This document shows, piece after piece, positions 26,866 through 62,173 of a DNA stretch of 64,000 nt (position 1 is its first letter; every line of letters begins with the position of its first letter). The translations under genes were made by a program, and so were the position numbers. This DNA comes from Selaginella moellendorffii (Eukaryota; Plantae; Lycopodiophyta), in assembly GCF_000143415.4 (NCBI RefSeq), contig NW_003314288.1:208002-272001 (forward strand). The letters are read 5' to 3'. The notes under the pieces are model-generated. The model was not told the origin of the DNA. It searched no databases and was given only the letters and a program-made list of their open reading frames with translations.

Positions 26866-27063
26866 TCAGTTGCGCCAACAGCGATTGTTGCGCCAGACCC
26901 AACCCCTCTGGCAACGGTGGCAACTGTTGTCATACCAATACCACCCCGACTGGCAGCGCTGGGCAGCAGCCTTTGCGATCCCTCCCACGTCCACGCCCAT
27001 GGCCAGCATCATCCCAAACATGGCAAGTGCCAAAAACATCACCAAGAAAGCCTTGTTCTCCAT
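26866..27063 (-). CDS. Small predicted secreted Cys/Trp/Arg-rich peptide precursor, long form (copy 1)
   Basis: 65 aa: hydrophobic leader plus QRCQSGWYWYDNSCHRCQRGWVWRNNRCWRN; TATAAATA about 75 bp upstream; five intact paralogues in window. Confidence 0.85.
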   Translation of the reverse strand: MENKAFLVMFLALAMFGMMLAMGVDVGGIAKAAAQRCQSGWYWYDNSCHRCQRGWVWRNNRCWRN

Positions 27064-27137
27064 GATTTGCTGCTCAGACTAAGATCAAGCAGGCTTGTAT
27101 ATTAGAGAGAAATGGTTTGATCTTTGAGCCAGGCTCG

Positions 27138-27145
27138 TATTTATA
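27138..27145 (-). promoter_or_regulatory. TATA box of peptide gene (conserved in all six intact copies)
   Basis: TATAAATA at 27138-27145(-), 29540-29547(+), 34007-34014(-), 37760-37767(-), 57273-57280(+), 62235-62242(-), each about 60-80 bp before the ATG. Confidence 0.75.
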
Positions 27146-27439
27146 GCTCGAGGCAGCACAGAATGTTAGATGGACGCTGGAGAGTTGTCTTGGGACGGCT
27201 TCGCTTATTTCTTATCTCTGAAAGAATATTTGAAAGTTAGTCCAGTAAAAGTGGTTCCGTGTTTGCCAATTCTTCTTTTTCCTATAATGCTTCTCCAACC
27301 CTTCAAATCCTTATCTCCAAAGTCACTCTAGCATTCCTCTTCTAGCTTTGCCAAAACTTTACAAGAGTTTGATTCAAAGTTCCGCTTCCAGTCACCCACA
27401 ACATTAATCAAAGTGTTGTTAAAGTTATACTTGTTGACT

Positions 27440-29070
27440 CTTTGATGTAGTCGCCTGGTTTCATCTCCAAGAGTTTCTCTGCGGCACGAGCTGCAACATC
27501 GATGGTCTTGCTGCTACCATGAACTTTGCAAGCACTGATCAAGCTCTTCCACGCAAGGAAATGCGGCTGGAAGGGCATCACCAGCAGCAGACCTTCGGCC
27601 TTGGCAACCAGCCCGGCTCATCCCAGCACATCTGCCATCACCTGGAAGTGAATCACATTTGGAGAAATACTGTACTCCGCCACCATAGATCGAAAGTAGT
27701 CGAGTGCCACACGGAGCTTCCCACCGTGATTGCAAGTCAGGAGAATCCCCTGGAAACTTATCTCGTTTCTCGCCTCGCCCTCCATTGCCATGCTGCCAAA
27801 AACCATCGCATTCCACAACACAATGCTCCGTTCAGGCAATGTGGAGAAGATCTTCCCGGCCTGCAAGACATTCCCCCTTTGAGCGCTCGCGGCAAGGATC
27901 GTGTTCCAGTTCGCTGTGGCTCTCACTGGCATGGCCGCGAAGAGCTCCCGCGCTTGGACGAGGCAATTGCTCTGGATGTAAGCTCCCAGCATCGTGTTCC
28001 ACGCGACGCTATCGTGCTGTGGCACTTGGTCGAACAAGGCTCTGGCATCGATCAAGCTCCCGTGCAAAGCAATTGCCGCCAGCATTGCCATCCAACGACG
28101 AGATCGCACTGTGGCATCCGTGCAAACATCTTCATGGCTTCTTCGAGGTGGCCGTGCTTGGAGTAGGCCAAGCAGTCCACACCACGTCGTCGTGACAAGG
28201 AGCTCGATCGAAGAGAACGCGAGCTTCTTCGAGCTGGTTTCTCTCGGCCAGTGCTGTGACCATTGTCGACCACGATGCAACGTTCCTCTGTGGCATGACA
28301 TCAAACAGAGACCTTGCTTCTTGCAGGCTGGACGTTGCCGCTAGCATTGCGTTCCACGAGATTAAGTCGCGGTGTGGCATTTTACTGAAAAGCTCCTTGA
28401 ATTGTTCAATATGCCCAAGGTGGGCATATGCAATGACAAGAACAGTCCATCCGAGCTCGTTGGTTTCGGGGATTATCATGAACACATTTAGCGCGTCGTT
28501 AACAAAATCTTTTCTTGCATACCCAGTAACCATAACAGTCCAAGAAACTATGTTGTGTTCTAGCATTTCATCAAAGATCTGGCTTGCCTGATCCATATGC
28601 CCGTTATGGGCATATGCTGTAAGTAGCGAGTTCCAGCAAACTACATCCCATTTTGGAACATGATCAAAAAATGCTTGGCACTCCTCCAAGTTTCCACGGT
28701 TTCCATGAGATAGAGATCCATGCAACAATATCTCTTTGTGGCAAACAGCTCTTTTGCTTCCTCAAGATCCGCATTTTGGGCATAAGCGCCAAGCATCCAG
28801 GAGAACTGTTGGGCTCATGGATGGCTGATAAACACCTGCCATGCTCGATCCGCGCGCTCGCACCTTTCTTAGTGCTGGATGAGAAGATTTGCGAGGTACC
28901 TGCTGGATTGGTGGTGAAGGCGAAGAGACACGCAGGAGGAGGAAGAACTTTCTATGTATTTCAACTGTATATGGATGGTACATGTACATGGAAACTACTG
29001 CCACGAGGGCATAATTACATGCCACATCATCTCTACCTCTAGCATTCAATCGGTACTCATCGATAATTTC
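27440..29070 (-). pseudogene. PPR pseudogene (paralogue of 48469-50247)
   Basis: High similarity to the intact PPR, but split across frames with deletions and stops. Confidence 0.9.
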
Positions 29071-29291
29071 CTTTGCTTTTTCCGGCGTTTTCCTGGAATA
29101 CAGTTAACTCTCTCGACACAAAATAGAGCTTTGATTTGTCAATGGCGAATAAGCGTTTCCAAAGGCGGCATTTCATATGGGGCAATTGGATTTCTGCTGT
29201 AAAAAGGAAACACAGTGTGTTCCCTAAATTTGTTCTTCATAGTTATCACGGTTTGAATTATAAATTGCTAAATAATCCCTGAGAGGAAACT

Positions 29292-29390
29292 TACAACCCA
29301 TACCAGCACCATCCTCGAGGTGCAATTCCTCCACGTCCACGCCCATGGCAGGCATTACAAACGTGACGAGCACCGAAAACAACAACCTTT
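29292..29390 (-). pseudogene. One-module peptide relic (type D)
   Basis: Minus strand reads ...GGIAPRGWCWYG with a frameshifted leader remnant. Confidence 0.55.
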
Positions 29391-29608
29391 TTGCTGCTAG
29401 TAAGCTTGTTATGATTTAATCTACGTAGTCCTTACCTCTTTGAGTTCCGTGTTTGGGAATTTCTTCTTCTTTCTATAATGCTGGAAAAAAGAAGAAATTC
29501 CCGAACACAGAACTTGACTACAGAGTTGTAGCTGCGAACTATAAATATGAGCCCCTTCTGCCGCACAGATCAAACTACTTCTCTCTTCTCTTAGTTTGTC
29601 AGCAAATC

Positions 29609-29788
29609 ATGGAGAACAAGGCTTTATACGTGTTGTTTTTGGCGCTCGCCATGTTTGTGATGATGCTGGCCACGGGCGTGGACGTGGGAGGAATCGCAAA
29701 GGCTGCTGCCCAGCGCTGCCAGTCGGGGTGGTATTGGTATGACAATAGTTGCCACCGTTGCCAGAGGGGTTGGAGCTGGCGCAACTGA
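29609..29788 (+). CDS. Secreted Cys/Trp/Arg-rich peptide precursor, short form (copy 2)
   Basis: 59 aa MENKALYVLFLALAMFVMMLATGVDVGGIAKAAAQRCQSGWYWYDNSCHRCQRGWSWRN; TATA at 29540. Confidence 0.82.
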   Translation: MENKALYVLFLALAMFVMMLATGVDVGGIAKAAAQRCQSGWYWYDNSCHRCQRGWSWRN

Positions 29789-30104
29789 AACCTCTCGTTT
29801 CACGGGGTAAGCCCAAGTTAAGAATCAGCATCGTAATTGATTTCATCATTCTGCAGTGCCAAGGGTCTGGAAACAAGAATAAAGACACTGATAACGTGCT
29901 TTCTGTATCGTGCGATGCTGGATGAGTTCTAGCAATAATATATAAATTGTCCAGGCCTCGATATAAAATGTCTGAATCTCTCTTGCTCCTTCTCCTCTCT
30001 TCTCCAAATCCCTCAACTTTCAATCAATCCATCGCTAGATTGATCGATTGCTCCAATGATCGGCAAGCAACAAGACTCGATTGGAGCATCACAACCAGGC
30101 CCAG

Positions 30105-30255
30105 CTAGCAGTGGGAGTGGAGGTCGGGGGGATGGTGCAGCGCTGCCGCGGAGGATGGTGGAATGGATTTCGCTGCATGCAATGCAATTGGTACGGGTAT
30201 GACAACAGAGGCCATCGATGCCAGCGAGGGGAATAGCAGCCGCTGCCTCCGCTGA
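30105..30255 (+). pseudogene. Three-module peptide relic (type B)
   Basis: LAVGVEVGGMVQRCRGGWWNGFRCMQCNWYGYDNRGHRCQRG, then a frameshift before NSSRCLR*. Confidence 0.7.
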
Positions 30256-30293
30256 AGAATCGCCAAAGCTTGCTGGGTTGACAGTGTGGATGA

Positions 30294-30397
30294 GATACAT
30301 AGAATACGAAAATGTTTTAGAGTCCTATGATACATAGAATACGAAAATGTTTTAGAGTCCTATGATACATAGAATACGAAAATGTTTTGGAGTCCTA
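30294..30397. repeat. 35-bp minisatellite x3
   Basis: GATACATAGAATACGAAAATGTTTTAGAGTCCTAT repeated three times. Confidence 0.95.
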
Positions 30398-32101: not shown

Positions 32102-32338
32102 CATCGATCATTTCCTTTGCTTTTACTGGCGTTTTCCTGGAATACAGTAAACTCTCTCGACTGACAAGATAGAGCTTTGATTTGTCAATGGTGAATAAGC
32201 GTACATGGGGCAATTGGATTTGTGCAGTACAAAGGAAACGGTGGTCATAGTGTGTTCCCTCAACTTGTTCTTCATAGTTGAATTATACATTTATAATTGC
32301 CGAGAGGAAACTTACAATCACAGAGAGGAGCTAGCTTT

Positions 32339-32474
32339 CTAGTTAAGGTGGCAGCTGCCGCCATACTAGTGCCATCCTCGAGGTGCGATTCCTCCCACGT
32401 CCACTCTCATGGCCAGCATCAGCACAAACATGGCAAGCACCGAAAACAACACCAAGCAAGCCTTGGTTCTCCAT
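32339..32474 (-). pseudogene. One-module peptide pseudogene (type D)
   Basis: MEN(+1)KACLVLFSVLAMFVLMLAMRVDVGGIAPRGWH*YGGSCHLN: frameshift and internal TAG. Confidence 0.75.
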
Positions 32475-33338
32475 GATTTGCTGCTAATACTAAGAGATCA
32501 ACGAGTATATTCGAGAGAAGTGATTTGATCTGTGAGGCCGCTCTATCTTGTCAGTCGAGAGAGTTTACTGTATTCCAGGAAAACGCCAGTAAAAGCAAAG
32601 GAAATGATCGAGACGTTACATACAATGCTGTAACGTCTCTTGGGGCGGCATCACTTTGTCCTTTGAAAGTTAGTCGAGGAAATCGTTCCGTGTTTGTCAA
32701 TTCCTTTTCTTTTCTATAATGCTGGGACATAGAACAACATGAATCCAGATGAGTAAAGGCACAGTTTATATAATATATATTATTGAACTCATGCATAACC
32801 ACGCGCCATTGCTATAGACTTCACTGCCACCGAAAAGACAAATATCCAAATAAATAGCTGGATCTTGACGATCTTTAGAAGTTTTTCATTTCATTTTCGA
32901 TCGAGAGAGCGGACGTGGTCGGTGTATGTAATTGCTAGACTTTGTCTTGGGAAAGAGGTCAAATTTGTTGAAATTTTTGTCTCCACTACTGCGTCTTATT
33001 TCCTTCTTGTTGCTTTTCCAAGTTCCACGTCGAGACTAAGATGGCAAACTTTTCATGACGAAAACATATATTATTTTATTTAATATTATATAATAATAAT
33101 TTTTAGTCCAAAAATTTGAATTTTTTTTATATTACAAGTGAACCAACTTTCTAGAAAACACATTGACAGTCTCAGGGGCATGAAAATTTCAAACACATGA
33201 ATAGAGATCACAGAAGATTCTCAGGACTCGTTCACTCTTATTCGATATATCTCATCCGCTGTCAGCCCAACTCTTCATGATTCGAGATGCGCTCCCGTGG
33301 TTCTTCAAGGCACCAGGCTAGCGAACTTTGGCGATTCT

Positions 33339-33450
33339 TCAGCAGCGGCTGCCGTTCGAGCGCCACCCTCGCTGGCATCGATGGCAACTGTTGTCATACC
33401 CGTACCAATTGCATTGCACGCAGCGAAATCCGTCGGCAGCGCTGCGCCAT
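33339..33450 (-). pseudogene. Type B peptide relic
   Basis: MAQRC, then a deletion frameshift, then GFRCVQCNWYGYDNSCHRCQRGWRSNGSRC*; no intact signal peptide. Confidence 0.7.
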
Positions 33451-33730
33451 CGCCTTGGTGAGCAAGGTGTGCCTGAGCCTGGTTGTGACGCTCCAATCGA
33501 GTCGAGCAATCGATCAATCCAGCGATGCATTGATTGGAAGAGAGGAGGAGCAAGAGACACTTAGACTTTTTATATCAAGCTGGACAACTTATTTATTAAT
33601 GCTGTGACTCATCACGATCAGAAAACACGTTACAGTGTCTTTATTCTTTCTTGGCACTGCAGAATGATGAAATCAAAGGCAATTACGATGTTCAATCTTA
33701 ACATGGGCTTACCCCGTGAAATGGGATGTT

Positions 33731-33928
33731 TCAGTTGCGCCAACAGCGATTGTTGCGCCAGACCCAACCCCTCTGGCAACGGTGGCAACTGTTGTCATAC
33801 CAATACCACCCTGACTGGCAGCGCTGGGCAGCAGCCTTTGCGATTCCTCCCACGTCCACGCCCATGGCCAGCATCATCACAAACATGGCAAGCGCCAAAA
33901 ACATCACCAAGAAAGCCTTGTTCTCCAT
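33731..33928 (-). CDS. Secreted Cys/Trp/Arg-rich peptide precursor, long form (copy 3)
   Basis: 65 aa, mature region identical to copy 1 with a synonymous Ser change; TATA at 34007. Confidence 0.85.
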   Translation of the reverse strand: MENKAFLVMFLALAMFVMMLAMGVDVGGIAKAAAQRCQSGWYWYDNSCHRCQRGWVWRNNRCWRN

Positions 33929-34574
33929 GATTTTGCTGCTCAGACTAAGATCAAGTAGGCTTGTATATTAGAGAAATGATTTGATCTGTGAGGCATGAGA
34001 GGCTCGTATTTATAGCTCGAGGCAGCACAAAATGTTAGATGGACGCTGGAGAGTTGTCTTGGGACGGCTTCGCTTATTTCTTATCTCTGGAAGAATATTT
34101 GAAAGTTAGTCCAGTAAAAGTGGTTCCGTGTTTGCCAATTCTTCTTTTTCCTATAATGCTTCTCCAACCCTTCAAATCCTTATCTCCAAAGTCACTCTAT
34201 CATTCCTCTTCTAGCTTTGCCAAAACTTTACAAGAGTTTGATTCAAAGTTCCATAGAAATTCCATGCTAATATACTAAACACGAACCTAATACCTTGTCT
34301 TCCTTCTCGACCACAGACTCAGTACGGCCGCTTCCAGTCACCCGCAACATTAATCAAAGTGGTAAATGCTACATCGTCTCTTCTCACTGGCAGGCTCTTG
34401 ACAATCTCTTGGGCATTCTAGAAAGTGACATCAATAATTATCAAGATTTTATTCATTAAAATTGTTTTTCTTATTTAAGTTAAAGAATTTAAGTTAAGTT
34501 ATTAATAGAATGTTATTCTATTAATTAGATGTTGTTAAAGTTATACTCTTTAACGTTAACCTGCCAAATAGACT

Positions 34575-36104
34575 CATGTGAAGCTGCTTTTGCAGATTCG
34601 ACATGAGCACGTAGAGCACTAGAGTCCCCTGGTTTCATCTCCAAGAGTTTCTCTGCGGCACGAGCTGCAACATCGATGTTCTTGCCGCTACCATGAACTT
34701 TGCAAGCGCTGATCAAGCTCTTCCACGAGAGGAAATGCGGCTGGAAGGGCATCACCAGCAGCAGACCTTCAGCCTCGGCAACCATCCCGGCTCGTCCCAG
34801 CACATCTGCCATCGCCTGGAAGTGAATCACATTTGGAGAAATGCTGTACTCGGCCACCATATATCGAAAGCAGTCGAGTGCCACACGAAGCTTCCCACCG
34901 TGATTGCAAGTCAGGAGAATCGCCTGGAAACTTATCTCGTTTCTCGCCTCGCCCTCCATCGCCATGCTACCAAAAAACTCAGCAGCTTTTCGCTCATGGG
35001 TGCGCAGCCATGGATCATCGCGTTCCACGACACAATGCTCCGTTCAGGCAATGTGGAGAAGATCTTCCCGACCTGCAAGAGATTCCCCCTTTGAGCGCTC
35101 GCGGCAAGGATCGCGTTCCAGCTCGCTGTGTCTCTCACCGGCATGGCTGTGAAGAGCTCCCGCGCTTGGACGAGGCAATTGCTCTGGATGTAAGCTCCCA
35201 GCATCGTGTTCCACGCGGCACTATCGTGCTGTGGCATTTTGTCGAACAAGGCTCTGGCATCGATCAAGCTCCCGTGCAAAGCAATTGCCGCCAGCATTGC
35301 CGTCCAACGACGAGATCGCGCTGTGGCATCCGTGCAAACATCTTCATGGCTTCTTCGAGGTGGCCGTGGTTGGAGTAGGCCAAGATCATGGCAGTCCACA
35401 CCACGTCGTCGTGACAAGGAGCTCGATCGAAGAGAATGCGAGCTTCTTCGAGCTGGTTTCTCTCGGCCAGTGCCGTGATCATTGTCAACCACGATGCAAC
35501 GTTCCTCTGTGGCATGGCATCAAACAGAGACCTTTCTTCTTGCAGGCTGGACGTTGCCGCTAGCATTACGAGATTAAGTCGCGGTGTGGCATTTTACTGA
35601 AAAGCTCCTTGGATTTTTCAATATGCCCAAGCTCGGCATATGAAGTGACAAGAACAGTCCATCCCAGCTCGTTGGTTTGGGGATTCTCATAAACAAATTT
35701 AGCGCATCGTTAACAAGTTCTTTTCGTTAACCATGACAGTCCAAGAAACTATATTGTGTTCTAACATTCCATCAAAGATCTGGCTTGCCTGATCCATATG
35801 CCCGTTAGGAGCATATGCTGTAGGTAGCGAGTTCCAGCAAGCTACATCCCATTCGGGAACCTGATCAAATAATGCTCGGCATTCCTCTAAATTTCCATGG
35901 TTTTCATGAGCCGTGATTACAGTGACCCATGCAACAATATCCTTTTGTGGCATCTGGTCAAACAGCTCTTTTGCTTCCTCGAGATACCCAATCTGGGCAT
36001 AAGCGCCAAGCATCAAGTTCCAGGAGAATCTTCTCATCCAGCTCTATGGAAGATGCGATCGCGCAGATCGAGCATGGCAGGTGTTTATCAGCATCCAAGA
36101 GCCC
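34575..36104 (-). pseudogene. PPR pseudogene, 5'-truncated
   Basis: Frameshifted copy of 48469-50247 that retains the E-domain tail; micro-inversion at its 5' end. Confidence 0.9.
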
Positions 36105-36193
36105 GTGTGTTCCCTCAACTTGTTCTTCATAGTTGAATTATACATTTAAAATTGCCGAGAGGAAACTTACGATCACAGAGAGGAGCTAGCTTT

Positions 36194-36327
36194 CTAGTTA
36201 CGGTGGCAGCTGCCGCCATACTAGCGCCATCCTCGAGGTGCGATTCCTCCCACGTCCACTCTCATCCAGCATCAGCACAAACATGGCAAGCACCGAAAAC
36301 AACACCAAGCAAGCCTTGGTTCTCCAT
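36194..36327 (-). pseudogene. One-module peptide pseudogene (type D)
   Basis: Near-duplicate of 32339-32474 (...IAPRGWR*YGGSCHRN). Confidence 0.75.
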
Positions 36328-37085
36328 GATTTGCTGCTAATACTAAGAGTTCAACGAGTATATTCGAGAGAAGTGATTTGATCTGTGAGGCCGCTCGTAT
36401 TTGTAGCTGGAGGCAGCATACAATGCTGTGGCGTCTCTTGGGGCGGCATCACTTTGTCCTTTGAAAGTTAGTCGAGGAATCGTTCCGTGTTTGTCAATTC
36501 CTTTTCTTTTCTATAATGCTGGGACATAGAACAACATGAATCCAGATGAGTAAAGGCACAGTTTATATAATATATATTATTGAAACTCATGCATCACCAC
36601 GCGCCATTGCTATAGACTTCACTGCCATTGAAAAGGACGAATATCCAAATAAATAGCTGGATCTTGACGATCTTTAGAAGGTTTCATTTCATTTTCGATC
36701 GAGAGAAGGGACGTGGTTGGTGTATGTAATTGCTAGACTTTGTCTTGGGAAAGAAATCAGATTCGTTGAAAATTTTGTCTCCACTACTGCGTCTTATTTC
36801 CTTCTTGTTGCTTTTCCAAGTTCGAGACTAACAAAAACATATAGATTTGACTCGTTCTAAATTGTTTTGATATTAAATGTGAACCAACTTTCTAGAAAAC
36901 AGTCTCAGGGGCATGAAAATTTCAAACACATGAATAGAGATCACTGAAGATTCTCAGAACTCCAAAGCGTTTTCGTTCACTCTTATTCTATATATCTCAT
37001 CCACGCTGTCAGCCCAACTTTTCATGATTCGAGATGCGCTCCCGTGGTTCTTCGAGGTGCCAGGCTAGCGAACTTTGGCGATTCT

Positions 37086-37197
37086 TCAGCAGCGGCTGCC
37101 ATTCGAGCGCCACCCTCACGGGCATCGATGGCAACTGTTGTCATACCCGTACCAATTGTATTGCACGCAGCGAAATCCATCGGCAGCGCTGCGCCAT
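37086..37197 (-). pseudogene. Type B peptide relic
   Basis: Duplicate of 33339-33450 with an extra stop (CHRCP*). Confidence 0.7.
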
Positions 37198-37499
37198 CGC
37201 CTTGGTGAGCTAGGTGTGCCTAGGCCTGGTTGTGACGCTCCAATCGAGTCGAGCAATCGATCAATCCAGCGATGCATTGATTGGAAGTCGAGGGATTTGG
37301 AGAAGAGAGGAGAAGGAGCAAGAGACATTTAGACTTTTTATATCAAGCTGGACAATTTATTTATTATTGCTGGAACTCATCACGATCAGAAAACACGTTA
37401 TCAGTGTCTTTATTCTTTCTTGGCACTGCAAAATGATGAAATCAAAGGCAATTACGATGTTGAATCTTAACATGGGCTTACCCCGTGAAACGGGATGTT

Positions 37500-37697
37500 T
37501 CAGTTGCGCCAGCAGCGATTGTTGCGCCAGACCCAACCCCTCTGGCAACGGTGGCAACTATTGTCATACCAATACCACCCCGACTGGCAGCGCTGGGCAG
37601 CAGCCTTTGCGATTCCTCCCACGTCCACGCCCATGGCCAGCATCATCACAAACATGGCGAGCGCCAAAAACAACACCAACAAAGCCTTGTTCTCCAT
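37500..37697 (-). CDS. Secreted Cys/Trp/Arg-rich peptide precursor, long form (copy 4)
   Basis: 65 aa, mature region identical to copies 1 and 3 with two synonymous changes; TATA at 37760. Confidence 0.85.
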   Translation of the reverse strand: MENKALLVLFLALAMFVMMLAMGVDVGGIAKAAAQRCQSGWYWYDNSCHRCQRGWVWRNNRCWRN

Positions 37698-39252
37698 GAT
37701 TTGCTGCTCAGACTAAGAGAAGAGAGAAGTGGTTTGATTTGTGAGGCAGGAGGGGCTCATATTTATAGCTCGAGGCAGCACACAATGCTTGATGGAGTCT
37801 AGAGAGTTGTCTTGGGACGGCATTGCTTAGTCCTTATAGTCAAGTTCCGTGTTTTGAAATTTCTTCTCTTTTCTATAATGCTGGGATCCACATAATTCTC
37901 GGGCGCTCTCCAAATGAGGATCCTTACATGATTTGTTTCTCCCAAGTCAGTCACTCTAGCTCGACAAAATCTTCTACCGTTGCTAAAACCTTACAAGTTC
38001 ATACTACTTGCAGATAGAGAAAGCCGTTTGGCTCGAAAGATGGAAGTAGCCTAGTGTTTGAAAGCAACACATGTTCTTGTAAGACCCTCGGCCCCCTCGG
38101 CCCGTGTAGGAGCTGGAGTGGTTGATGGTATTCCACTCTCTCACTTATGTTGTCTCGTTGTCTCCACACTCTCTAGGTCATCCAGCTCAAGCTCCAAGTA
38201 GATAAGAATAATTTCTCACGAAACCATGCTGTTCTCAAAACATAAACAAGTAATTGCCCAGCAAATGCTGGGTGGTTGGTTCTGGTTGCCAGCCTCAGCT
38301 AATTCGACTAGACTAGAAGTGCACGGCTATGACTGAATCTGGGTGATTAGCAAGTAGATAGAGAGCTTCTATTCCTCCCACATGCACCAACAGTGGCAGG
38401 CAGTAGCTATCATGCCTTTTCTCCATGGCAGCCCATCGTGATTTTTACTTTGCCCAATTCCAGCAGCAGTGGCAGCTACACTATTACGCCCCTCTCCTGG
38501 TGCAACCAAAGCCCTGCAATGTATGGCTGAGGCCAAAGCAGTGGCATGGTGATTTTGACGATGCTAGGCCTGAGCCATCACCTACAGCCAAAAATGCCAC
38601 TATCACCGAGTGGAGAGATTTCAGTAGGGCAAATGCCACCAAGTGGATTGACGGTTATGCCCTAACCACCCCAAGCTCCTCCAACCTCTTCGTATTGTCA
38701 TAGTGTTTTGCGTGGCATTGGGGCATGGGGAGAGTGATTGCTGGACGGGAATTTGGTTCTCATAGCAAATGCACAAGGCAGCAGTTGCTGATAGTGCCTG
38801 AGGTCTTCACTAGAGAATTCTAGAGTTTTCAAGAAGCTCCTGAGGAGAACAGAGGACATGCTGACCTGTATTGGAATAGTCTACAACAAGTGCCTAACCA
38901 TGGCATTTTCTGCAAGCGTCAAACTAGCGCCTATTTGCCAGAAAGTGGTGCTTCACATTTATCTGGAGCATCTTGATGCCTTTTGCGACACTTTGGTAGA
39001 GGCCATGTGCATATCCCACCACCCGATGTAAGAGATGACCAAATGTCCACAGTTTTAGCTTCAAGGGAAATGTCGCTGCGGTGTAATATAACAACACAAC
39101 GGCAGCTTGCCCATCCAAGCTCTTGCAAGCTGCTTTTCCACCTGAAGACCACAAAAGCTTGGAGGATGAGAGGCAAAGTGCTTGATACCTTTGTTCAGCC
39201 GTTACCTACTCTAGGCATCTTATGGGAATTGTGCTTGGTCTTGAGTGAGTTT

Positions 39253-44345: not shown

Positions 44346-44347
<2 letters not shown>

Positions 44348-44376
<29 letters not shown>
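44348..44376. repeat. (CT)n microsatellite
   Basis: About 14 CT units visible. Confidence 0.95.
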
Positions 44377-44381
<5 letters not shown>

Positions 44382-47850: not shown

Positions 47851-47859
47851 GATCTTAAG

Positions 47860-47975
47860 CACCAAGAAAGCCTTGGTCCTTATGATTTATTGCTCAGACT
47901 AAGATCAAGTAGGCTTGTATACTAGAGAGAAATGATTTGACCTGTGAGGCAGGAGGGGGTCACATTTATAGCTCA
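47860..47975 (-). pseudogene. 5' remnant (promoter, UTR, first codons) of a seventh type A peptide gene
   Basis: Matches 27040-27150 and 33905-34020; ATG mutated and body replaced by the copia relic. Confidence 0.65.
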
Positions 47976-48468
47976 AGGCAGCACAAAATGTTAGATGGAG
48001 TCTAGAGAGTTGTCTTGGGATGAATTCACTTATTTCTTATCTCTTGAGTAAAAGTGGTTCTGTGTTTGCCAATTCTTTTTTTTTTCTTTCTATAATGCTT
48101 CTCCAACCTTCAAATCGTTATCTCAAAAGTCACTCTAGCATTGCCAAAACTTTACAAGAGTTTGACTCAAAGTTCCACAGAACTTGGATGATATTATACT
48201 GAACACAAACCAGATGTAAAGTTCTTGTCTTCCATTTTGACCACAGACTCAGTACGGCCACTTCAAGTCACCTGCAAACAAGCAAAGTAGTCTCTTCTCA
48301 CTGGCAAGTTCTTGACAATCTCTTGGGCATTCCAGACCTGCCTAGCACGCCCAAATAGATCGATCATGCAGCAGTAATGATCAACAACGGGAGCACATGA
48401 CCAGAAAGTGGTCCATGCTTCAGCCATCCGCTGCATTATGTTATTCTATTCACTAAATCTTGTTAAAG

Positions 48469-50247: not shown

Positions 50248-50385
50248 CGATCATTTCCTTTGCTTTTACCGGCGTTTTCCTGGAATACAGTAAAATCTCT
50301 CGACTGACAAGATAGAGCAATGGCGAATAAGCGTACATGGGGCAATTGGATTTGTGCAGTACAAAGGAAACGGTGGTCATAGTGT

Positions 50386-51134
50386 ATCTCGTCGCTTGGA
50401 CGGCAATGGTGGCGGCAATTGCTTTGCACGGGAGCTTGATCGATGCCAGAGCCTTGTTCGACAAAATGCCACAGCACAATAGCGCCGCGTGGAACACGAT
50501 GCTGGGAGCTTACATCCAGAGCAATTGCCTCGTCCAAGCGCGGGATCTCTTTGCGGCCATGCCGGTGAGAGACACAGCGAGCTGGAAAGCGATCCTTGCC
50601 GCGAGCGATCAAAGGGGGAATCTCTTGCAGGCCGGGAAGATCTTCTCCACATTGCCTGATCAGAGCATTGTGTCGTGGAACGCGATGATCCATGGCTGCG
50701 CACAGAATGGCCATGAGTGAAAAGCTGCTGAGTTTTTTGGTAGCATGGCGATGGAGGGCGAGGCCAGAAACGAGATAAGTTTCCAGGCGATTCTCCTGAC
50801 TTGCAATCACGGTGGGAAGCTTCGTGTGGCACTCGACTACTTTCGATCTATGGTGGCCGAGTACAGCATTTCTCCAAATGTGATTCACTTCCAGGCGATG
50901 GCAGATGTGCTGGGACGAGCCGGGCTGGTTGCCGAGGCTGAAGGTCTGCTGCTGGTGATGCCCTTCCAGCTGCATTTCCTCGCGTGGAAGAGCTTGATCA
51001 TCGCTTGCAAAGTTCATGGTAGCAGCAAGAACATCGATGTTGCAGCTTGTGCTGCAGAGAAACTCTTGGAGATGAAACCAAGGGACTCGGTGCTCTATGT
51101 GCTCATGTTGAATCTGCAAAAGCAGCTGCGATGA
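50386..51134 (+). pseudogene. Inverted duplicate of the 3' half of the PPR gene
   Basis: Reverse complement of about 48480-49226; internal TGA at 50718; no start codon of its own. Confidence 0.9.
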
Positions 51135-51417
51135 GTCCATTTGGCTGGTTAACTTTCTATCAATGTAACATATGCCAAAGTACAATAACAAGATTTAATT
51201 AATAGAATAATAGAAATAATTATAAGTGTGAAAGGGAATACAGAAATGTGCATATCAATTAGCCCAAAAACCCTAGTTTATATATAGGAGTGAGTGGTCC
51301 GGATTGAAACTAATCCGACGGCTACGAAAATCCCACTATACTAATATTAATATACGGTATTGTAGCCATATACCTGGCCCTCACATCATCTCCCCCTCTC
51401 GGAATAATGAAAGACCA

Positions 51418-54400
51418 TCAAGGTTCTCTTGTAGACGAGCTGGGATCTGGAGGAATGTTAGGAGGAGGCATCGGCGGATCTGTAGGTGGTATTAACTGCT
51501 CCTGATCCCTTTGTATGAAGCGTTTCAACTGTTGCACATGCACAATCTCTGGAGGATTGGCTTGCTGGACATCATGTTGAACCTCATAAACTTGTGGTCC
51601 AACTTGCCGCAACACCCGATACAGTCCTTTCCACTGTGCAAGGAGCCCCTTAGATAAACCACATACCGTAAGATGGGGAAAACAGACTAACACCAAATCA
51701 TCCACTTTGTACTCTGCAGGTGCACAATGATGGGAATTGTACCGCCATTGTTGTCCCACTTGTACGCGGCCTAAGTGTTCGGTAGACTCCACTCGGACAA
51801 GTGGAAGAATGCTTGTCAAATACTGATCTCATGATTTAGCATCCACAGCTCGTGGCAATCGCGAAGGTAAACCTAGCTCCGTTGGTAGTATTGGATCATG
51901 ACCATATAGGAGTTTATATGGTGAAGCACCAACAGAACTCTGCACCCCTGTGATATATGCATACCGAAGAGACGGCAAATAACCATCCCAATCTGAATGC
52001 TGAAAGTTCATATACTTCGCAATCATCCCCTTGAATATCCGAATGAGCCGTTCCATCAGACTGTCTGATTGTGGATGATAAGCATTCATGAAAGTGTGGC
52101 GTATCCCCAACCGAAACGTCAAAACATGAAATGCCTTAGCCATAAATACGGGACCATTATCCGAAAGAATCCGCTCTGGACAAGAATGCTGGAACACCAC
52201 TTGATTGAGGAGGAAGTATCCAACAGCAGTTGCAAAGGCATTAGCAAGAGCACCAACTTCCACCCAACGAGTCAAGTAGTCAGAAGCAATAATAACATAC
52301 TCATTGCTAGCAGTTGACCGTGAAAAAGGTCTTATAAGATCAAATGCCACCAACTCAAACGGACGGGAAATTGCAATTGACTCCAACTGTCCTTCTGCAG
52401 CATGAGAGGGAGTATTACGAGTTTGGCACCAAACGCAGCTACGCATATACCGAATAATATCACGTCGCATCTCCGGCCAATAGAAAGACCTGCGCAACTT
52501 CTCGGTTACACGACGATGTCCCATATGCCCTCCTAGAACAGAAGAATTATGGTAGGCATGGAGAAACTGTGGAATAAAGATAGAAGGTACCACCAACCAT
52601 AAATGATCATTAGGATCCGTCCCCACAAAATAAAGAAGGCCGTCTTCAAGGCGATATTGAGAATGTAAATGCCGGAAAAGCAAGTCATTAGCAAGTGATG
52701 CAGGATTCTCAAACCCATCTCGAAGCCTTCGAATCCACGGCTCAATCTTTTGAGCCTCGCAAACCTTATCAAGAGAAGGTAAATCTTGCTCTGCGTCTTG
52801 TGGACACTGAACGTCAAGTATAGCAACCATTGATGGCACAGAATCCTCGTCTAGAAAATCCATAGAGGCTAGAACAACAGGCTCATCAGAAACATGAGAA
52901 GAGAATGGAGAAGGAAAAGGAGCTCGAGAAAGGGCATCAACATCAGCCATAGAACTCTCTGGGCGATGAATAACATCAAAATCATATATCTGAAGTTTCA
53001 AAGCCCATCAAGCAGTACGACCAACCAAGTTCTTCCGCTTCAATAATGAAATAACAACAGCATGATCACCTTCAAGTAACATCTGAGAACCATGTAGATA
53101 TGCATTAAGTTTCTCGAAACCCCAAACTGCTGCCAAACACTCCTTCTCTATTGTGGAGTAGGTCATTTCCGCTGGTTGTAATGTACGGCTTATATATGCA
53201 ATAGGATGGCGTTGACCAGACACACTCGAACTCTCTTGCATCAACACACCTCCAAGACCAATGTCATAAGCATCCACGCGCAAAATAAAAGGTTGAGTGT
53301 AGTTAGGATATGCCAAAACCAGAGGAGTCGTCAATAGCTCTTTGAGATCCCCGAACGCCTGCTCACAATCCAGAGACCAGATGAAAGATGATGTTGATGA
53401 CTTCAGCAACGCTCGCAACGGTGCAGTGCGATCAGAAAGATGATCCACAAAACGACCGAGATACTGCACCTTGCCCAAGAAGCGCTACACATCATTCACA
53501 CACTTCGGAGTAAGGAACTTTAGAACAGCCACAAGTTTGTCAGGATCAACTTGCAAACCCTCACGAGAAATACGGTACCCAAGATAAGTTGTATCCTTGG
53601 ACCCAAACACGCACTTCGACCGCTTCAACTTTAAACCAATGTCGCATAGCCGATCCAACACTTTACAAACATCACGAACATGCTCCTCCCACATCCCCTC
53701 CGAGTGAATCAAGACATCATCAATGAAGCTAGCAGTCACCTCTGGCATATCACAAAGAACCTCATCCATCATCGGCTGAAAAGTTGCTGGAGCATTGTTC
53801 AAACCAAACAGCATCACCAAGAACTCGTACAAACCAAACGGTGTATGAAAAACAGTCTTAGGAATATCTTCTTTGGCCATCGGTATTTGCCAGTACCCAA
53901 AAGCAAGATCTAGCTTGGTGAACCAATGACTTTGCCCTAGACGATCCAAGAGATCAGTAGTGTGAGGAAAAGGGTACACATCTGGGATCGTCACTTCATT
54001 TAATGGATGATAGTTGATCCAGAAACGAATACTCCCATCAGGCTTCGTCACAAGATGAGGTTCACATGCCCAAGGACTCCACAACTTCCGAATAACACCC
54101 TTTTCCAACATCACTTTGACATTTGCACGTAAAATCTTGATCTCCTTGGGTGACCGATGACGAACAAGAACCTTGATTGGACGAGCATCCCCGGTTGGAA
54201 TCGGATAACGTGTGGCAATCTTGGCCCCAGACGATAGGTTAAATTCAAAAAGATCAAAATACTCCTTCATGAGCCGGTCAACAGCTGCAACACAAAGATC
54301 ATCAGAGGGATTGGAAAAGGGAAGTGCAGAACAAGATGGAAACATAGGAGGAAATAGTGAGGGAACAAAAGTAATGGAAGCAGAGGTAGAAGTAGAGGGA

Positions 54401-54498
54401 CGAAGAGGTACAGAAGTGAGAGGAATGGATGAAACATAAGGAAGTATGAGACAAGGGGGAGAAGCCTCAAAGTCACACTTGGTATGATTGTGCTGCAA
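51418..54498 (-). pseudogene. Gypsy pol (RT-RNaseH-integrase), one frame with three in-frame stops
   Basis: KLDLAFGYWQI, FIDDVL, YSTIEKECLA, GGHMG...CVWCQ, LSDNG motifs. Confidence 0.9.
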
Positions 54499-55066
54499 CT
54501 AATCCATACCAAGAATGAGGTCAAAAGCTTGACTCGGCACTACCCGCAACGACGGCAACTCAAGCTTGAGATCGCCCACATGCACAACCAGGTCCACCTC
54601 ATCTCATGCACATGCATGTGTACGGCTGTTGCCATAAAGAATGAAAATTGGATCCGCCTCACGACACAAGTGTAGACGACAACATGTGGCAACAGGTCGA
54701 GCAATAGAAGATAAACTCGAATCTGTATCAACCAACACGGAGAGAATAATAGGAGACCTCTTGTTATAAAAATGAGCTTGGAAAGTAAACATTGGATGAA
54801 CCAATGCCAAGTGAACCCCTTGATGATACTTCTGAAAGAAAGATGGAGGGGTCACTAACTTATTCGCGCAAAGTCCCTCCATTACTCGTGCAACTCCTCG
54901 TTTCCCGGTCTCAGTTTCCAAACCTTCCACTTCAGCAGCACCAACGGGACGTTGCTGACGCCAAGGTCTCCACCCAAGAAATGGAGTTCGCCAATCCGGA
55001 AAGCACCGACAATGCCGATAAGTATGACCAACTTCATCACACTTATCTTAGTAACGGACATCATGG

Positions 55067-55659
55067 TGTAAGCTCCTAAGTTTGGACTTCCCGGGAGGTC
55101 ACCCAGCCCAGTACTATTCAAACCCAAGGACGCTTAACCCCAAATATCCCAAGACCCTTAACCGATTGGAAAAGGGGGTGCACTCTTATTCATGGGCACT
55201 TTCCCTCTATATTTGAACCCTATGGACTGTCTCTCGAGTCGTTCCCTTTGGTTGCTTACAATCCACCACGCTTCCTTGCAAGTTCACGCCCTCGTGAACG
55301 GAAGCTAAGAGCCGCAGCTCTCCTGAGAGCCCCACTCTCTTGACACCCTACCCCTCGGGTCGAGCCCAGCGGGAGCAAACTGGACTAGCCAGATGTCAAT
55401 CAACATGTGGTGCGATTCCCTTAGCCAACCAACAAAGTCGGACCCGAGACCCCTCTGATAACAAATGTAAGCTCCTGAGTTTGGACTTCCCGGGAGGTCA
55501 CCCAGCCCAGTACTATTCAAACCCAATGACGCTTAACCCCAAATATCCCAAGACCCTTAACCGATTGGAAAAAGGGGTGCACTTTTATTCATGGGCCCTT
55601 TCCCTCTATATTTGAACCCTATGGACCGTCTCTCGAGTCGTTCCCTTTGGTTGCTTACA
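55067..55659 (-). mobile_element. Complete Cassandra-like TRIM with 5S-derived LTR segment, inserted in gypsy gag
   Basis: 194-bp LTRs at 55067-55260 and 55466-55659, 205-bp interior, PBS-like TGTTATCAGAG, TSD CATGG/CACGG; same family as 10356-10922. Confidence 0.92.
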
Positions 55660-57349
55660 CACGGCCACGTCCACGTCCTTGCCCTTGTCCTTGGACTCGA
55701 GTAGCAGCAGCATCAACCTCCATTGGAACAGGACCATCACTCATAGGAAGTGGAGCGGAAGGATGTGCAGCGAGAAGTGGAAGAGGCAACGTCTCATAAC
55801 GTTGTGCCAAGTGAAGAGCATTGTCAAGGGTGGCAGGAGCAAATGCATGCACAAGGCCGACAAAATTTTGACGAAGTGCTGGCCACAACATTCCTAGCTT
55901 GATCCGCTCTGACATATTGGGCTCCGCACAAAGCAAAAGACTTCGGAAACAAATGCCAAATTGCATCACCGACTCAAATGGCCCTTGGCAAAGACGATGC
56001 AATTGTTGGAAGGCATCATCACAATCGTCAGCATGTCTGAAGGCGCGTTTGAAGACGTCCGAAAGAACACTCCAATCCCTACGAGTGGCCGCACTCAATC
56101 CATTGTACCACTACAACGCCATCCCTTGGAGACACATGGGAAACTCACACAAATGTTGAGCATCATCCCAAGAATGATATGTGGCAATCACCGTGAAGTG
56201 ATCGAACCAATGGTACACATCATCCCCAAGATTCCCATGAAAGAACTCCAGCCGAATGCGAGGATTGGCACCAAGAGCAGGAGGAGTTGGACCACGTGCT
56301 GTGAATGCCGCCATCAATTGAGTTATTGCAAGCGCATAGCATCAAGCAATTGGACCAATTGCTGCTCTAGAGTCGAAGAAGGAGATTGCTGATCTGCCAT
56401 GAAGACGGATAAAGAAAGAGCAAAAGAAGAGAAATGACAAAAAAACGAGAAGGAAATGGGAGATCTAGATAATGCAAAAAGCTAGATCTAAACCAAAATC
56501 CTGAAAAGGAAGAACAAAAGAAAGGAAATGGAAAAAGCTAGATCTAGATGATGCAAAAGTTAAATGTAAACCAAAATCCCAAATTCAAGCACTCCTCAAG
56601 GACAATCAATGTGAGTGCTTGGAATATGGAAAAGGAATACAGAAATGTGCATATCAATTAGCCCAAAAACCCTAGTTTATATACAGGAGCGAGTGGTCCG
56701 GATTGAAACTAATTCGACGGCTATCAAAATCCCACTATGTTAATATTAGTATACGGCATTGTAGCCGTACACTTGGCCCTCACATAAGTAAATTAAATAA
56801 GAATAAAAAATTTATCGAATAATATCTCATTAATTGTTGCAGCTTATATTGCTGCTACGTGATCGATCTGTTTTGGCATGCTGGGCATGCCCAAGAGATT
56901 GTCAAGAGCCTGCCAGTGAGAAGTGTAGTATTTACGACTTTGATTAATGTTGCAGGTGACTTGAGGCGGCTGTACCTAGTGTGTGGTCGAAATGGAAGAC
57001 AAAGTATGAGGTTCGTGTTTGGTATATTAGCATCAAAGTTCTATGGAACTTTGAATCAAACTCTTGTAAAGTTTTGGCAAATCTAGAAAAGGAATGCTAG
57101 AGTGACTTTGGAGATAAGGATTTGAAGGGTTGGAGAAGCATGATAGAAAAAAAAAGAACGGAACCACTTTTACTGGACTAACTTTCAAATATTCTTCCAG
57201 AGATGAGAAATAAGCGAAGCCGTCCCAAGACAACTCTCCAGCCTCCATCTAACATTTTGTGCTGCCTCGAGCTATAAATACGAGCCCCTCCTGCCTCACA
57301 GACCTCTCTAATATACAAGCCTACTTGATCTTAGTCTGAGCAGCAAATC

Positions 57350-57529
57350 ATGGAGAACAAGGCTTTCTTGGTGATGTTTTTGGCGCTTGCCATGTTTGTG
57401 ATGATGCTGGCCATGGGCGTAGACGTGGGAGGAATCGCAAAGGCTGCTGCCCAGCGCTGCCAGTCGGGGTGGTATTGGTATGACAACAGCTGCCACCGTT
57501 GCCAGAGGTGTTGGGTCTGGCGCAACTGA
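57350..57529 (+). CDS. Secreted Cys/Trp/Arg-rich peptide precursor, short form (copy 5; absent from the ORF track)
   Basis: Translated by hand, 59 aa: MENKAFLVMFLALAMFVMMLAMGVDVGGIAKAAAQRCQSGWYWYDNSCHRCQRCWVWRN; TATA at 57273. Confidence 0.82.
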   Translation: MENKAFLVMFLALAMFVMMLAMGVDVGGIAKAAAQRCQSGWYWYDNSCHRCQRCWVWRN

Positions 57530-58006
57530 AACCTCCCGTTTCAAGGGGTAAGCCCAACTTAAGAGTCAGCATCATAATTCTTCTGAACTCATCATTCTGC
57601 AGTGCCAGGGTCTGGAAAGAAGAATAAAAGAACATTGATTGCATGAGATCCAACGATAATATAGAAACTGTCCAGGCCTTGATAAAAATCTCTATTTCCC
57701 ATCTGGATTCATAGCTTCATTTCAGGAGTTTACTTCATTTTGACTCCAGGCCTGCCGACTGAGCTTTTCTTGTGTGGCACTTTTACTTCCTTCTTCGTGT
57801 TGCAAACTTCGTTCTATTCCCAGTGGCCCCAGCATTATAGAAGAGAGAAGGAATTGACAAACATGGAACAACTAACTTTCAAATATTCAAGATGCCTTCC
57901 CAAGAGCATTCTAGCGTCTTGAGCTATAACTATGATGGGGATCACAGATCAAACCACTTCTCTCCAGTATACTAGAGCTTGTTTCTCTTAGTTTTTGCAG
58001 CAAATC

Positions 58007-58114
58007 ATGAAGAACATGGGCCCATGGTTTGTTGTGATGATGCTGACCATGGGAGTGGATATGGGAGAAATCGCAACCGTTGCTGCCTGGTACTGGTATG
58101 ACCGATGCCCTTGA
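58007..58114 (+). pseudogene. Type C deleted peptide paralogue
   Basis: MKNMGPWFVVMMLTMGVDMGEIATVAAWYWYDRCP*; duplicate of the 26402 copy. Confidence 0.65.
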
Positions 58115-58579
58115 TGATGGCATTGATATGTCACAACCAGAGAGCTATAAGCTCCTCTGTGTGGTGGTTTCAGAGATCTTTTGCAAACTTTTGGCTACAA
58201 CTCACTGTGTGTTCTGGAGTTGCATGGCCGAAATGAAAGATTAATGAATCAGGGATTTCTATTGTATTCAAAGCCATAATAAATAGACTAGTGTGGATAA
58301 GTTCTAACTCAAACGGTTACTTTTTTCTCTCCTTTTTCTTCATAGTTGTTGTTTCTTTCTTTCTTGGCTGTTTCTTGGTTTTCTTTTTTGCTTGTAGTTG
58401 CTTCTAGTTTTTTTTGGTGCTTATGTGTTTCTTTTGCAGTAGCAATAGCTTGAATAACACTTGTGAATTCTGGACTTCTTAAACCAATCCCACTACTAAC
58501 TTGCACCATTGGTATAAATAAAAAATGATATTATGCTCTTACAAATAATTTTGCATGAAAGAATGCCACTTTGTATGCT

Positions 58580-60400: not shown

Positions 60401-60690
60401 TCTATGCGTTCTTTTCGGTTTCAGCTTGATGAATAGCCAAGCTTAACAAATCGCTTCCTTCTACTGTTTTCTGATCTCTAGAGATGAAATAGAGAAATGG
60501 AATGAGTTCTAAATGGCTAGATTTCTGAGTGAAATAAGCGATCAACTCTTGTATGACACTGAGATCCATCATAAAACCTTTCATGCCAATGAAACCCCGT
60601 GTGATTCTGCATTTTACCTCATGGAAACCGCCAAAAATTGCCACGTGATTTTACATTTTACTCACGATTTATGAGTTTTTTCACTAAATC

Positions 60691-60790
60691 ATGAAGAACA
60701 TGGCATGGTTGCTTCTGGCGCCTGCCATGGTTTTGATGCTGGCCATGGGAGAGGATGTGGGAGAAACCTCAACGGTTTGTTGCTTGGTAT
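60691..60790 (+). pseudogene. Peptide-family leader relic
   Basis: MKNMAWLLLAPAMVLMLAMGEDVGET without Cys modules. Confidence 0.55.
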
Positions 60791-61528
60791 TAGTTCCTTT
60801 TCTTATAATGCTGGGACACCACAACAACACTAAATGAAGCTGTGAATCCAGATGAGTAAAGACAACACTTTTTGTTTTTTCACAGTTTATAATATTTATT
60901 ATTGTTGAACTCATGCATTACCGCGCGTCCACGCGTTGCTATAGACTTCACTGCCACTAAAAAGAACAAAAATCCAAATAAACAGTTGGATCTTGACGAT
61001 CTTTAGAAGAGAAGTGTGTGTTTCATTTCATTTTCGATCGAGAGAGGGTGTATGTAGTTGCTAGACTGTCTTGGGAAAGAGATCAAATTCGTTGAAAAAC
61101 TTGTCTCCACAGCTGCGTCATATTTCCATCTTGTTGCTTATCCAAGTACCAGGTCGAGACTAAGAAGGCACAACTTTTGACAAAAAAAGAAAAATAGTTT
61201 ATTTCATATTGTGAGGTCCAAGTGTATGGCTAGATCGCTTTACACCCATGGATAGATTGACTCGAGATTTCTTAGTTGGCTTTCTTTCTTTTTTATTTTT
61301 CATGTTCTAAATTTTCTTGTCATTCTGGTCATTGCGAACGTTCAACAACTTTCCAGAAAACACTGACATTTTCAGGGCATGAAAATTTCAAACACATCAC
61401 AGAAGGCTCATAGGACTCCAAAACATTTTCATTCACTCTTATTCTCTATATCTCATCCACGCTGTCAACCCAAATTTTCACGATTCGAAATGCTCCCGTG
61501 GTTCTTCCAGGGCAAACTTTGGCGATTC

Positions 61529-61645
61529 TCAGCGGATGCAGCGGCTGCCATTTCTCCTTGCTGGCATTGATGGGATCTCCGTACAATTGCATTGCATGCG
61601 GCGAAGACCATTCCAGTAACATCCTCCGTGGTAGCGCTTGGCCAT
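61529..61645 (-). pseudogene. Type B peptide relic
   Basis: MAKRYHGGCYWNGLRRMQCN...NGSRCIR*; Cys/Trp substitutions and internal indels. Confidence 0.65.
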
Positions 61646-61993
61646 ACCGGATTGATCGATTGACAAGAGTCGATTGGAGCATCACAACCAGGCCCAGGCA
61701 CACCTAGCGGTGGGAGTGGAGCATCACCTAGGCAGCGATTGATTGATTGAAAATCGAGGGATTTGGAGAGAGAGGAGGAGAAAGAGAGGTTCAGATATTT
61801 TATATCAAGGCCTGGACAATTTATATATTATTGCTGGAACTCATGCAATGCCATCCAGCATTGCACGATACAGAAAACACATTATCAGTGTCTTTATTCC
61901 TGTTTCCAGACCTTCGGCACTGCAGAATGATGAAATCAAAGGCAATTACGATGCTGATTCTTAACTTGGGCTTACCCCGTGAAACGAGAGGTT

Positions 61994-62173
61994 TCAGTTG
62001 CGCCAGACCCAACCCCTCGGGCAACGGTGGCAACTATTGTCATACCAATACCACCCCGACTGGCAGCGCTGGGCAGCAGCCTTTGCGATTCCTCCCACGT
62101 CCACGCCCATGGCCAGCATCATCACAAACATGGCGAGCGCCAAAAACAACACCAACAAAGCCTTGTTCTCCAT
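61994..62173 (-). CDS. Secreted Cys/Trp/Arg-rich peptide precursor, short form (copy 6)
   Basis: 59 aa ending QRCQSGWYWYDNSCHRCPRGWVWRN; TATA at 62235. Confidence 0.82.
   Translation of the reverse strand: MENKALLVLFLALAMFVMMLAMGVDVGGIAKAAAQRCQSGWYWYDNSCHRCPRGWVWRN

Follow-up and report, generated by a model that had tools for sequence, protein, structure and literature searches.

The 64-kb window of Selaginella moellendorffii DNA analysed here (64,000 nucleotides of contig NW_003314288.1; all positions are those of the window) carries six intact open reading frames (ORFs) of 59 or 65 codons for small cysteine-rich peptides, and transcript contigs together with the pattern of substitution among the copies support the view that these are real transcribed genes under purifying selection. 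The predicted product is a secreted cysteine-rich peptide, which is a known kind of molecule, on a scaffold that we did not find described in plants. We propose, on a case that we regard as evenly balanced, that the genes form a Selaginella-restricted birth-and-death family of small peptides that act in the apoplast in the manner of cationic host-defence peptides.

An earlier note on this DNA had reported six intronless ORFs at 26866, 29609, 33731, 37500, 57350 and 61994, each preceded at 60-80 bp by a TATA-type motif. The six ORFs are present, the positions being their left ends and the strand being minus for four of the six. The TATA box, TATAAATA, lies 69-86 nt 5' of each ORF rather than 60-80, and while the coding sequences are uninterrupted the genes are not, since in every copy a GT..AG intron of 50-56 nt, overlooked earlier, starts 18 nt past the stop codon in the 3' untranslated region (UTR). 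With a nucleotide profile we found about ten further decayed fragments of the family in the window, among them multi-module remnants 3' of three of the intact copies and diverged leader-only genes (Table 1).

Each precursor begins with a leader whose basic N-region, 18-residue hydrophobic core and modelled helix (residues 2-21) agree with the secretion-type leader proposed earlier. A 12-residue spacer and a first module (residues 35-48) follow, and both are identical in all six intact copies, with slight variation among the leader residues. In the three 65-residue copies a second module completes a 31-residue tail, in which a recount gave the 6 Arg, 1 Asp, 5 Trp and 4 Cys reported previously, together with 2 Tyr and no Lys. 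The cysteines of this 31-mer are spaced 10-2-10; its calculated mass is 4.1 kDa, its isoelectric point 9.7 and its net charge about +4.8, and the grand average of hydropathy (GRAVY) of the mature peptide, -1.7, is that of a very hydrophilic molecule. Nine matches to the module pattern lie in the window, against none in 100 shuffles.

The description of the tail as two 14-residue repeats with four cysteines applies to these three long copies, whereas the three 59-residue copies lack a complete second module. In the latter, 18 bp are missing between two 9-bp direct repeats (coding-sequence positions 169 and 187), which keeps the reading frame and accounts for the loss of the fourth cysteine; two of them (29609 and 61994) have 3 Cys, and all of the amino-acid changes in module 2 (Q52P, G54C and V56S) are confined to this group. 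Given that the long form completes the second module, we infer that the short copies are derived, partly relaxed forms of one and a half modules that arose by deletion between the direct repeats. The invariance of module 1 likewise stands among the copies in the window, but not across the family, in which expressed relatives carry S47G or S39R and a RefSeq relative, described below, has a different module.

The site at which the leader would be removed can be considered under the (-3,-1) rule, by which candidate sites fall at residues 23, 28, 30, 32 and 34. The one nearest the hydrophobic core lies between G23 and V24 (AMG/VD), while that between A34 and Q35 (AAA/Q), favoured in the earlier note, is twelve residues beyond the core; judged in this way, cleavage at AMG/VD would be at least as likely as at AAA/Q. 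Were it to occur there, the spacer, which contains no dibasic site, would be a propeptide. A pyroglutamate at Q35 is possible.

Twenty listed public sequencing runs hold part of the stretch, 14 of which we guess to be RNA, and we examined their contigs over 32900-38300. Exactly 37426-37481 is missing from contigs of runs X1 and X2, and its ends read GT..AG on the coding strand. The TATA box starts 32 nt above the 5' end of the X2 contig (37735), beyond which there is almost no depth. In X1 the summed contig depth is >100,000 over the ORFs and ~200 or less over the PPR remnant, a wide gap, although contig depth measures abundance poorly and the figures sum all paralogues. The depth drops sharply near two AATAAA hexamers, and this region is likely to be the main 3' end of the transcript of the 37500 copy. 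RNA-like contigs also continue at far lower depth for ~600 nt past the 3' UTR intron (36846-37425), through a decayed downstream paralogue, and represent either a long 3' UTR or a read-through form. Relative to the window copy, S47G and V56S are seen in the contigs of X2, X4 and X7, and S39R and A32V in another; these contigs therefore derive from paralogues or alleles, and loose contig ends, read by eye with no reference, point to still other second modules. Expression is thus established at the level of the family, not for each copy.

Comparison of the six ORFs gave a mean pairwise nonsynonymous divergence (pN) of 0.027 and a synonymous divergence (pS) of 0.087, a ratio of ~0.3 where a value near 1 had been named as grounds for abandoning the proposal, against a divergence of 0.11-0.13 in the flanks. 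In module 1 all 3 changes are synonymous (p 0.003; the corresponding value for the whole ORF is 0.049), and the synonymous changes listed in the earlier note are present, at codons 39, 46, 47 and 62. No frameshift is found in the coding sequences, compared with 5-40 indels per kb in the flanks and the PPR copies. Given that the substitution counts are small and that the comparison was confined to ORFs selected as intact, the selection result is supporting rather than decisive. A simulation of ORF survival (0.1-1%) was discounted, since it took ORFs selected as intact and assumed a star tree.

For the 31-mer AlphaFold2, run on the single sequence, predicts two beta-hairpins (strands 7-10/13-16 and 21-24/27-30; predicted local distance difference test score, pLDDT, 85), in accord with the two hairpins suggested before, and for the precursor a leader helix, a short spacer helix and the same two hairpins. 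By analogy with known hairpins, disulfides C3-C14 and C17-C28 are inferred for the mature peptide. Fold searches with the model returned no significant match (Z 2.1-2.7, Foldseek E >1.8); the weak neighbours (root-mean-square deviation, rmsd, 1.2-2.2 A) are the Cys-rich domains of mGluR, EphA2 and TNFR-like proteins and CBM14 domains, the last making up 6 of the 10. Since these neighbours are alike in kind, the module appears to be a common small disulfide hairpin, here free-standing, so that on the model the building block would be old and the peptide family undescribed.

With the 65-mer as query, a word-indexed search of 5.8 billion proteins, which reaches proteins of 36-114 residues only, found no stand-alone homologue, and none of the six peptides has an exact match in a collection of 15 billion proteins. 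A full HMMER pass (phmmer) over 1.84 billion representative proteins gave six hits. One is truly homologous, namely residues 1-52 of XP_024531936.1 (P0122), annotated in S. moellendorffii as 'putative pectinesterase 11' (56% identity over 55 residues, E 6.5e-8). This N-terminus consists of leader, spacer and one module, and is followed by an acidic stretch and a pectinesterase domain. No other pectinesterase with such an N-terminus was found in the length range searched, and since the fusion has no second example, its acidic junction is odd and its enzyme part is shortened internally, XP_024531936.1 is probably a chimeric gene model rather than a real fusion. Three further hits (P0123-P0125) are acidic prokaryotic surface proteins that share a short hairpin word only, and P0121 and P0126 were set aside as low-complexity repeat artefacts. 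In Pfam and NCBIfam all hits were sub-threshold, and a Sar8.2 leader (E 0.13), DUF4215 (E 0.06) and a TraF leader were rejected on this ground. Rfam gave no match, an Atlas feature search weak (0.76-0.77) or no matches, metagenomes, prokaryotic genomes and viral contigs no related loci, and our literature searches no description of the family. The statement in the earlier note that the family was not recognised is thus borne out, and as far as the literature was searched the cysteine pattern has not been described among plant peptides.

Host defence fits best with a small, rigid, polycationic and aromatic-faced peptide that is abundant and is encoded by a cluster with fast turnover. As a defence peptide, it would be made from family transcripts that start at the TATA promoter, have the 3' UTR intron spliced out and are very abundant in one run; the hydrophobic leader helix (residues 1-22) would carry the precursor into the secretory pathway, where cleavage would occur either at A34/Q35 directly or at G23/V24, the spacer then being lost at a later stage. 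With a possible pyroglutamate at Q35 and the two predicted disulfides, the mature peptide would be released into the apoplast, where its Arg side chains could bind anionic microbial surfaces and its exposed Trp/Tyr faces could either stack against glycans of the wall, chitin among them, or enter membranes, and thereby inhibit fungi or bacteria. Since the peptide is very hydrophilic, membrane lysis is less certain than binding to microbial surfaces or chitin. Defence genes typically gain and lose copies in clusters and vary in their modules, and both are seen here, the latter among expressed paralogues; the preponderance of CBM14-type domains among the weak structural neighbours is a further point in favour. 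The mass, the isoelectric point and the two possible disulfides also agree with what is usual for antimicrobial peptides of plants (2-6 kDa, basic, 2-6 disulfides; PMC4695807), and the richness in Arg and Trp with the bias of beta-hairpin antimicrobial peptides (PMC13001179).

Several considerations weigh against this assignment. The antimicrobial role and the peptide itself are predictions from sequence, model and transcripts; the structural matches are all insignificant, and a GRAVY of -1.7 speaks against strong membrane lysis. The mature region is identical in the three long copies and gives no sign of diversifying selection, and in the sole annotated relative the family sequence is fused to a pectinesterase; should that gene model be correct, it would point to the wall. 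The small substitution counts from ORFs picked as intact, and runs that are guessed to be RNA with transcripts not assignable to single copies, also belong on this side.

The main rival, which we consider rather doubtful, is that the peptide is a structural component of the cell wall, an abundant polycation that binds and compacts the plant's own de-esterified pectin or other wall polymers. Pectin-compacting cationic peptides have a precedent in RALF22, which binds pectin (10.1101/2023.08.23.554416), and such a role would suit the very high transcript abundance in one run, the strong positive charge combined with aromatic faces, and the pectinesterase model XP_024531936.1, in which leader, spacer and one module stand in front of the enzyme. 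However, the latter is probably chimeric for the reasons given, the peptide has no RALF motif or Pfam match, and genes for core wall components less typically turn over fast. It is a good deal less probable that the family provides signalling ligands recognised by receptor kinases in development or reproduction. The secreted cysteine-rich architecture (secretion being predicted) and the invariance of spacer and module 1 among the six copies would be expected of such ligands, and presence in one run of a study (X7) and not in two others (X23 and X24) may mean tissue specificity; but variable expression is equally compatible with defence, and the extreme transcript abundance, the variable module number and the lack of relatives outside Selaginella are unlike conserved peptide hormones.

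Repeated disulfide-closed loops are also a common inhibitor design, and a weak shape match to the polyphenol-binding protein EHEP (Z 2.4) could be taken to suggest an anti-herbivore or enzyme-inhibiting miniprotein that uses rigid loops against proteases or glycosidases or to bind polyphenols or glycans. We rank this lower again, as improbable, given that neither a Bowman-Birk loop nor an alpha-hairpinin pattern is present and no solved inhibitor is among the sequence or fold matches. Finally, the ORFs might have no peptide function and be young duplicated DNA or a non-coding transcript, their conservation being apparent because the copies are recent or homogenised. The protein records hold none of the six, about ten broken copies lie nearby, and in one pair divergence is similarly low in the coding sequence and the upstream DNA (2.0% vs 2.2%). 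Against this, synonymous sites are about as diverged as the flanks while amino-acid sites are not, the 18-bp deletion preserves the frame, a 56%-identical paralogue retains leader, spacer and module, Rfam has no match and the copies lie outside the three long terminal repeat (LTR) elements, all of which makes an absence of function very unlikely.

Should host defence prove correct, a lycophyte family of tandem hairpins would extend the beta-hairpin antimicrobial peptides of plants beyond the flowering plants, on a scaffold of 31 residues that is easy to synthesise and test. We suggest more tentatively, and with less than even confidence, that lycophytes invented a modular class of host-defence peptides from a free-standing 14-residue Trp/Cys hairpin otherwise known only inside large proteins, the number of units being changed by small repeat-mediated deletions and duplications. 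These would be minimal glycan-binding or antimicrobial peptides on a scaffold new to plants, and in some tissue their transcripts would rank with the most abundant while lacking annotation. In any case the annotation of a reference plant genome has overlooked a large and highly transcribed gene family or merged it into a wrong gene model, and if pectin or chitin is bound the modules would be among the smallest glycan-binding modules known.

Table 1. Members of the peptide family, transcript signals and neighbouring genes and elements in the window.
Feature	Position	Strand	Remarks
Long-form gene, intact	26866-27063	-	65 aa, two modules, 4 Cys; TATA 27138-27145; 3' UTR intron 26796-26847
Short-form gene, intact	29609-29788	+	59 aa, 3 Cys, V56S; TATA 29540-29547; 3' UTR intron 29807-29856
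Long-form gene, intact	33731-33928	-	65 aa; TATA 34007-34014; 3' UTR intron 33657-33712; RNA-like contigs over gene
Long-form gene, intact	37500-37697	-	65 aa; leader 1-22, spacer 23-34, predicted mature 31-mer 37503-37595
TATA box of 37500 copy	37760-37767	-	Furthest listed contig 5' end 37735, 32 nt below TATA start
GT-AG intron of 37500 copy	37426-37481	-	56 nt, 3' UTR; absent from spliced contigs of X1 and X2
Two AATAAA hexamers of 37500 copy	37360-37414	-	Starts 37414 and 37365; near sharp drop of X1 summed contig depth
Short-form gene, intact	57350-57529	+	59 aa, G54C; TATA 57273-57280; 3' UTR intron 57548-57602
Short-form gene, intact	61994-62173	-	59 aa, 3 Cys, Q52P; TATA 62235-62242; 3' UTR intron 61920-61975
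Diverged paralogue, decayed	26316-26485	-	Leader and spacer only; nucleotide profile
Leader fragment, decayed	29320-29416	-	Nucleotide profile
Multi-module paralogue, decayed	30130-30240	+	No leader; 3' of 29609 copy; nucleotide profile
Broken paralogue	32338-32539	-	Promoter, frameshifted leader, partial module; nucleotide profile
Multi-module paralogue, decayed	33340-33460	-	3' of 33731 copy; nucleotide profile
Broken paralogue	36193-36423	-	Near-identical to 32338-32539; nucleotide profile
Multi-module paralogue, decayed	37085-37210	-	In-frame stop; inside long 3' read-through of family transcript; nucleotide profile
Truncated copy	47859-47986	-	Promoter and first codons; nucleotide profile
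Diverged paralogue	57916-58133	+	36 codons: leader, spacer, collapsed module; nucleotide profile
Diverged paralogue	60672-60776	+	Leader and spacer, no module; nucleotide profile
PPR gene, PLS-type, intact	48469-50247	-	592 aa; mostly short motifs, no DYW domain
Broken PPR copy	27449-28916		Duplicated along with peptide gene
Broken PPR copy	34582-36031		Duplicated along with peptide gene
Broken PPR copy	50386-51156	+	Duplicated along with peptide gene
Gypsy-type retroelement	19495-24401		236-bp LTRs 97% identical; gag-pol as two adjoining ORFs with one stop between
Copia-type retroelement	39253-43939		119-bp LTRs 98.3% identical; inserted just 5' of the unit of the 37500 copy
Older Gypsy-type element	51230-56785		157-bp LTRs 91.7% identical; between inverted PPR copy and 57350 peptide gene

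The surroundings are those of plant nuclear DNA (GC 44.6%), in which PLS-type PPR genes lie together with three LTR retroelements. The peptide gene and a PPR gene have been duplicated together, in both orientations. The decay of the PPR copies asserted previously is true of three of them, but a fourth is an intact ORF of 592 codons, adjoined by the inverted partial copy on the plus strand, which is 96.6% identical. The intact PPR protein has no exact match in the 15-billion protein collection, and the best annotated S. moellendorffii PPR proteins are only ~35% identical to it. That the peptide ORFs are fragments of a transposable element, which the earlier note had said would refute its proposal, was rejected, as all six lie outside the three LTR elements; capture by Helitron or Pack-type elements was not searched for. 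Three exact-like 35-bp tandem repeats occupy 30294-30397, 3' of the 29609 copy, and tandem arrays of degenerate hexamers, strongly skewed between the strands, lie at 7364-7648, 16231-16393 and 17069-17444.

Among established plant peptides, the three long copies fit the general description of a basic cysteine-rich peptide of 2-6 kDa with an even number of cysteines. Their spacing is unlike that of the defensins, thionins, LTPs, heveins, snakins and alpha-hairpinins, as the earlier note had held and as pattern and Pfam tests confirm: defensins, thionins, heveins, knottins, LTPs and snakins have six to twelve cysteines against four here, no gamma-core or hevein pattern is present, and in place of the CxxxC..CxxxC motifs and helix-loop-helix of alpha-hairpinins we find a 10-2-10 spacing and an all-beta model. 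The Bowman-Birk inhibitors are characterised by a nine-residue loop, C-x-P1-S-x-P-P-x-C, which is absent, and RALF was dismissed for want of a Pfam match and of a dibasic site in the spacer.

The beta-hairpin antimicrobial peptides, of which plants are known to have only two families, both in flowering plants, are defined as single hairpins of 11-25 residues with a bias towards Arg and Trp (PMC13001179). Like gomesin, tachyplesin, the plant Ib-AMP and RCB-1 (PMC13001179), the spikemoss peptide is short, cationic, rich in Arg and Trp and, by prediction, closed by disulfides into beta-hairpins; gomesin has the N-terminal pyroglutamate that the spikemoss peptide may share, and the net charge of +4.8 with 6 Arg and 0 Lys falls within the +1 to +8, Arg over Lys, of the class. 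In contrast, the 31-residue model has two serial hairpins with one predicted disulfide each, and so lies outside the single-hairpin definition. Assignment to Ib-AMP was rejected, as its CC and CxxxC motifs and its multi-peptide precursor have no counterpart here (PMC4695807); its I-III/II-IV pairing also differs from the pairing predicted for the spikemoss peptide. Ps-AFP1 of pea and other unclassified four-cysteine plant antimicrobial peptides (PMC4695807) are similarly small, bind fungal walls and have sequential I-II and III-IV disulfides, the pairing predicted here; the alpha-beta trumpet fold proposed for Ps-AFP1, from its description, sets it apart.

Among larger proteins, the chitin-binding CBM14/peritrophin-A domains (Avr4, Der p 23, Blo t 12 and chitotriosidase) weakly resemble the model in their small two-hairpin disulfide fold (rmsd 1.2-1.9 A over 25-31 residues and Z 2.1-2.6, tied with mGluR and the TNFR-type domains), and have a C-x2-G hairpin, exposed aromatics and a positive surface. 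However, the chitotriosidase domain has six cysteines (PMC4844120) against the four of the spikemoss peptide, which is half the length and does not match the Pfam CBM_14 profile. A near-identical short hairpin word occurs in the Trp/Cys repeats of the prokaryotic surface proteins, best in P0124 (58% over 24 residues), but these are acidic and membrane-anchored, have a different leader and score weakly. P0123, P0124 and P0125 (also L001:2624-2875) carry repeats of an acidic Trp/Tyr/Cys hairpin word near-identical to module 1, and P0124 has a faint CBM_14 hit (E 0.01). The secreted repeat proteins of GCG_CRPN type are weakly similar by Atlas feature score (0.76). The likeness to the N-terminal hairpin of long-form C-type lectin domains noted earlier is present, but it is neither significant (E 0.34) nor specific, as the mGluR (rmsd 1.5 A over 31 residues, Z 2.7), EphA2 and TNFR-type domains and CBM14 also match this hairpin shape, and of the complete lectin domain (~120 residues) the first hairpin alone aligns. 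Since the TNFR-type and lectin matches are below significance, convergence is as likely as homology. The mGluR Cys-rich domain, EphA2, UL144 (TNFR/furin-like) and the lectin hairpin all have the same C-x2-G-aromatic-x-aromatic-x4-C hairpin followed by x2-C, but there the hairpins are parts of large animal proteins, whereas in the spikemoss the module would be the whole of the secreted product.

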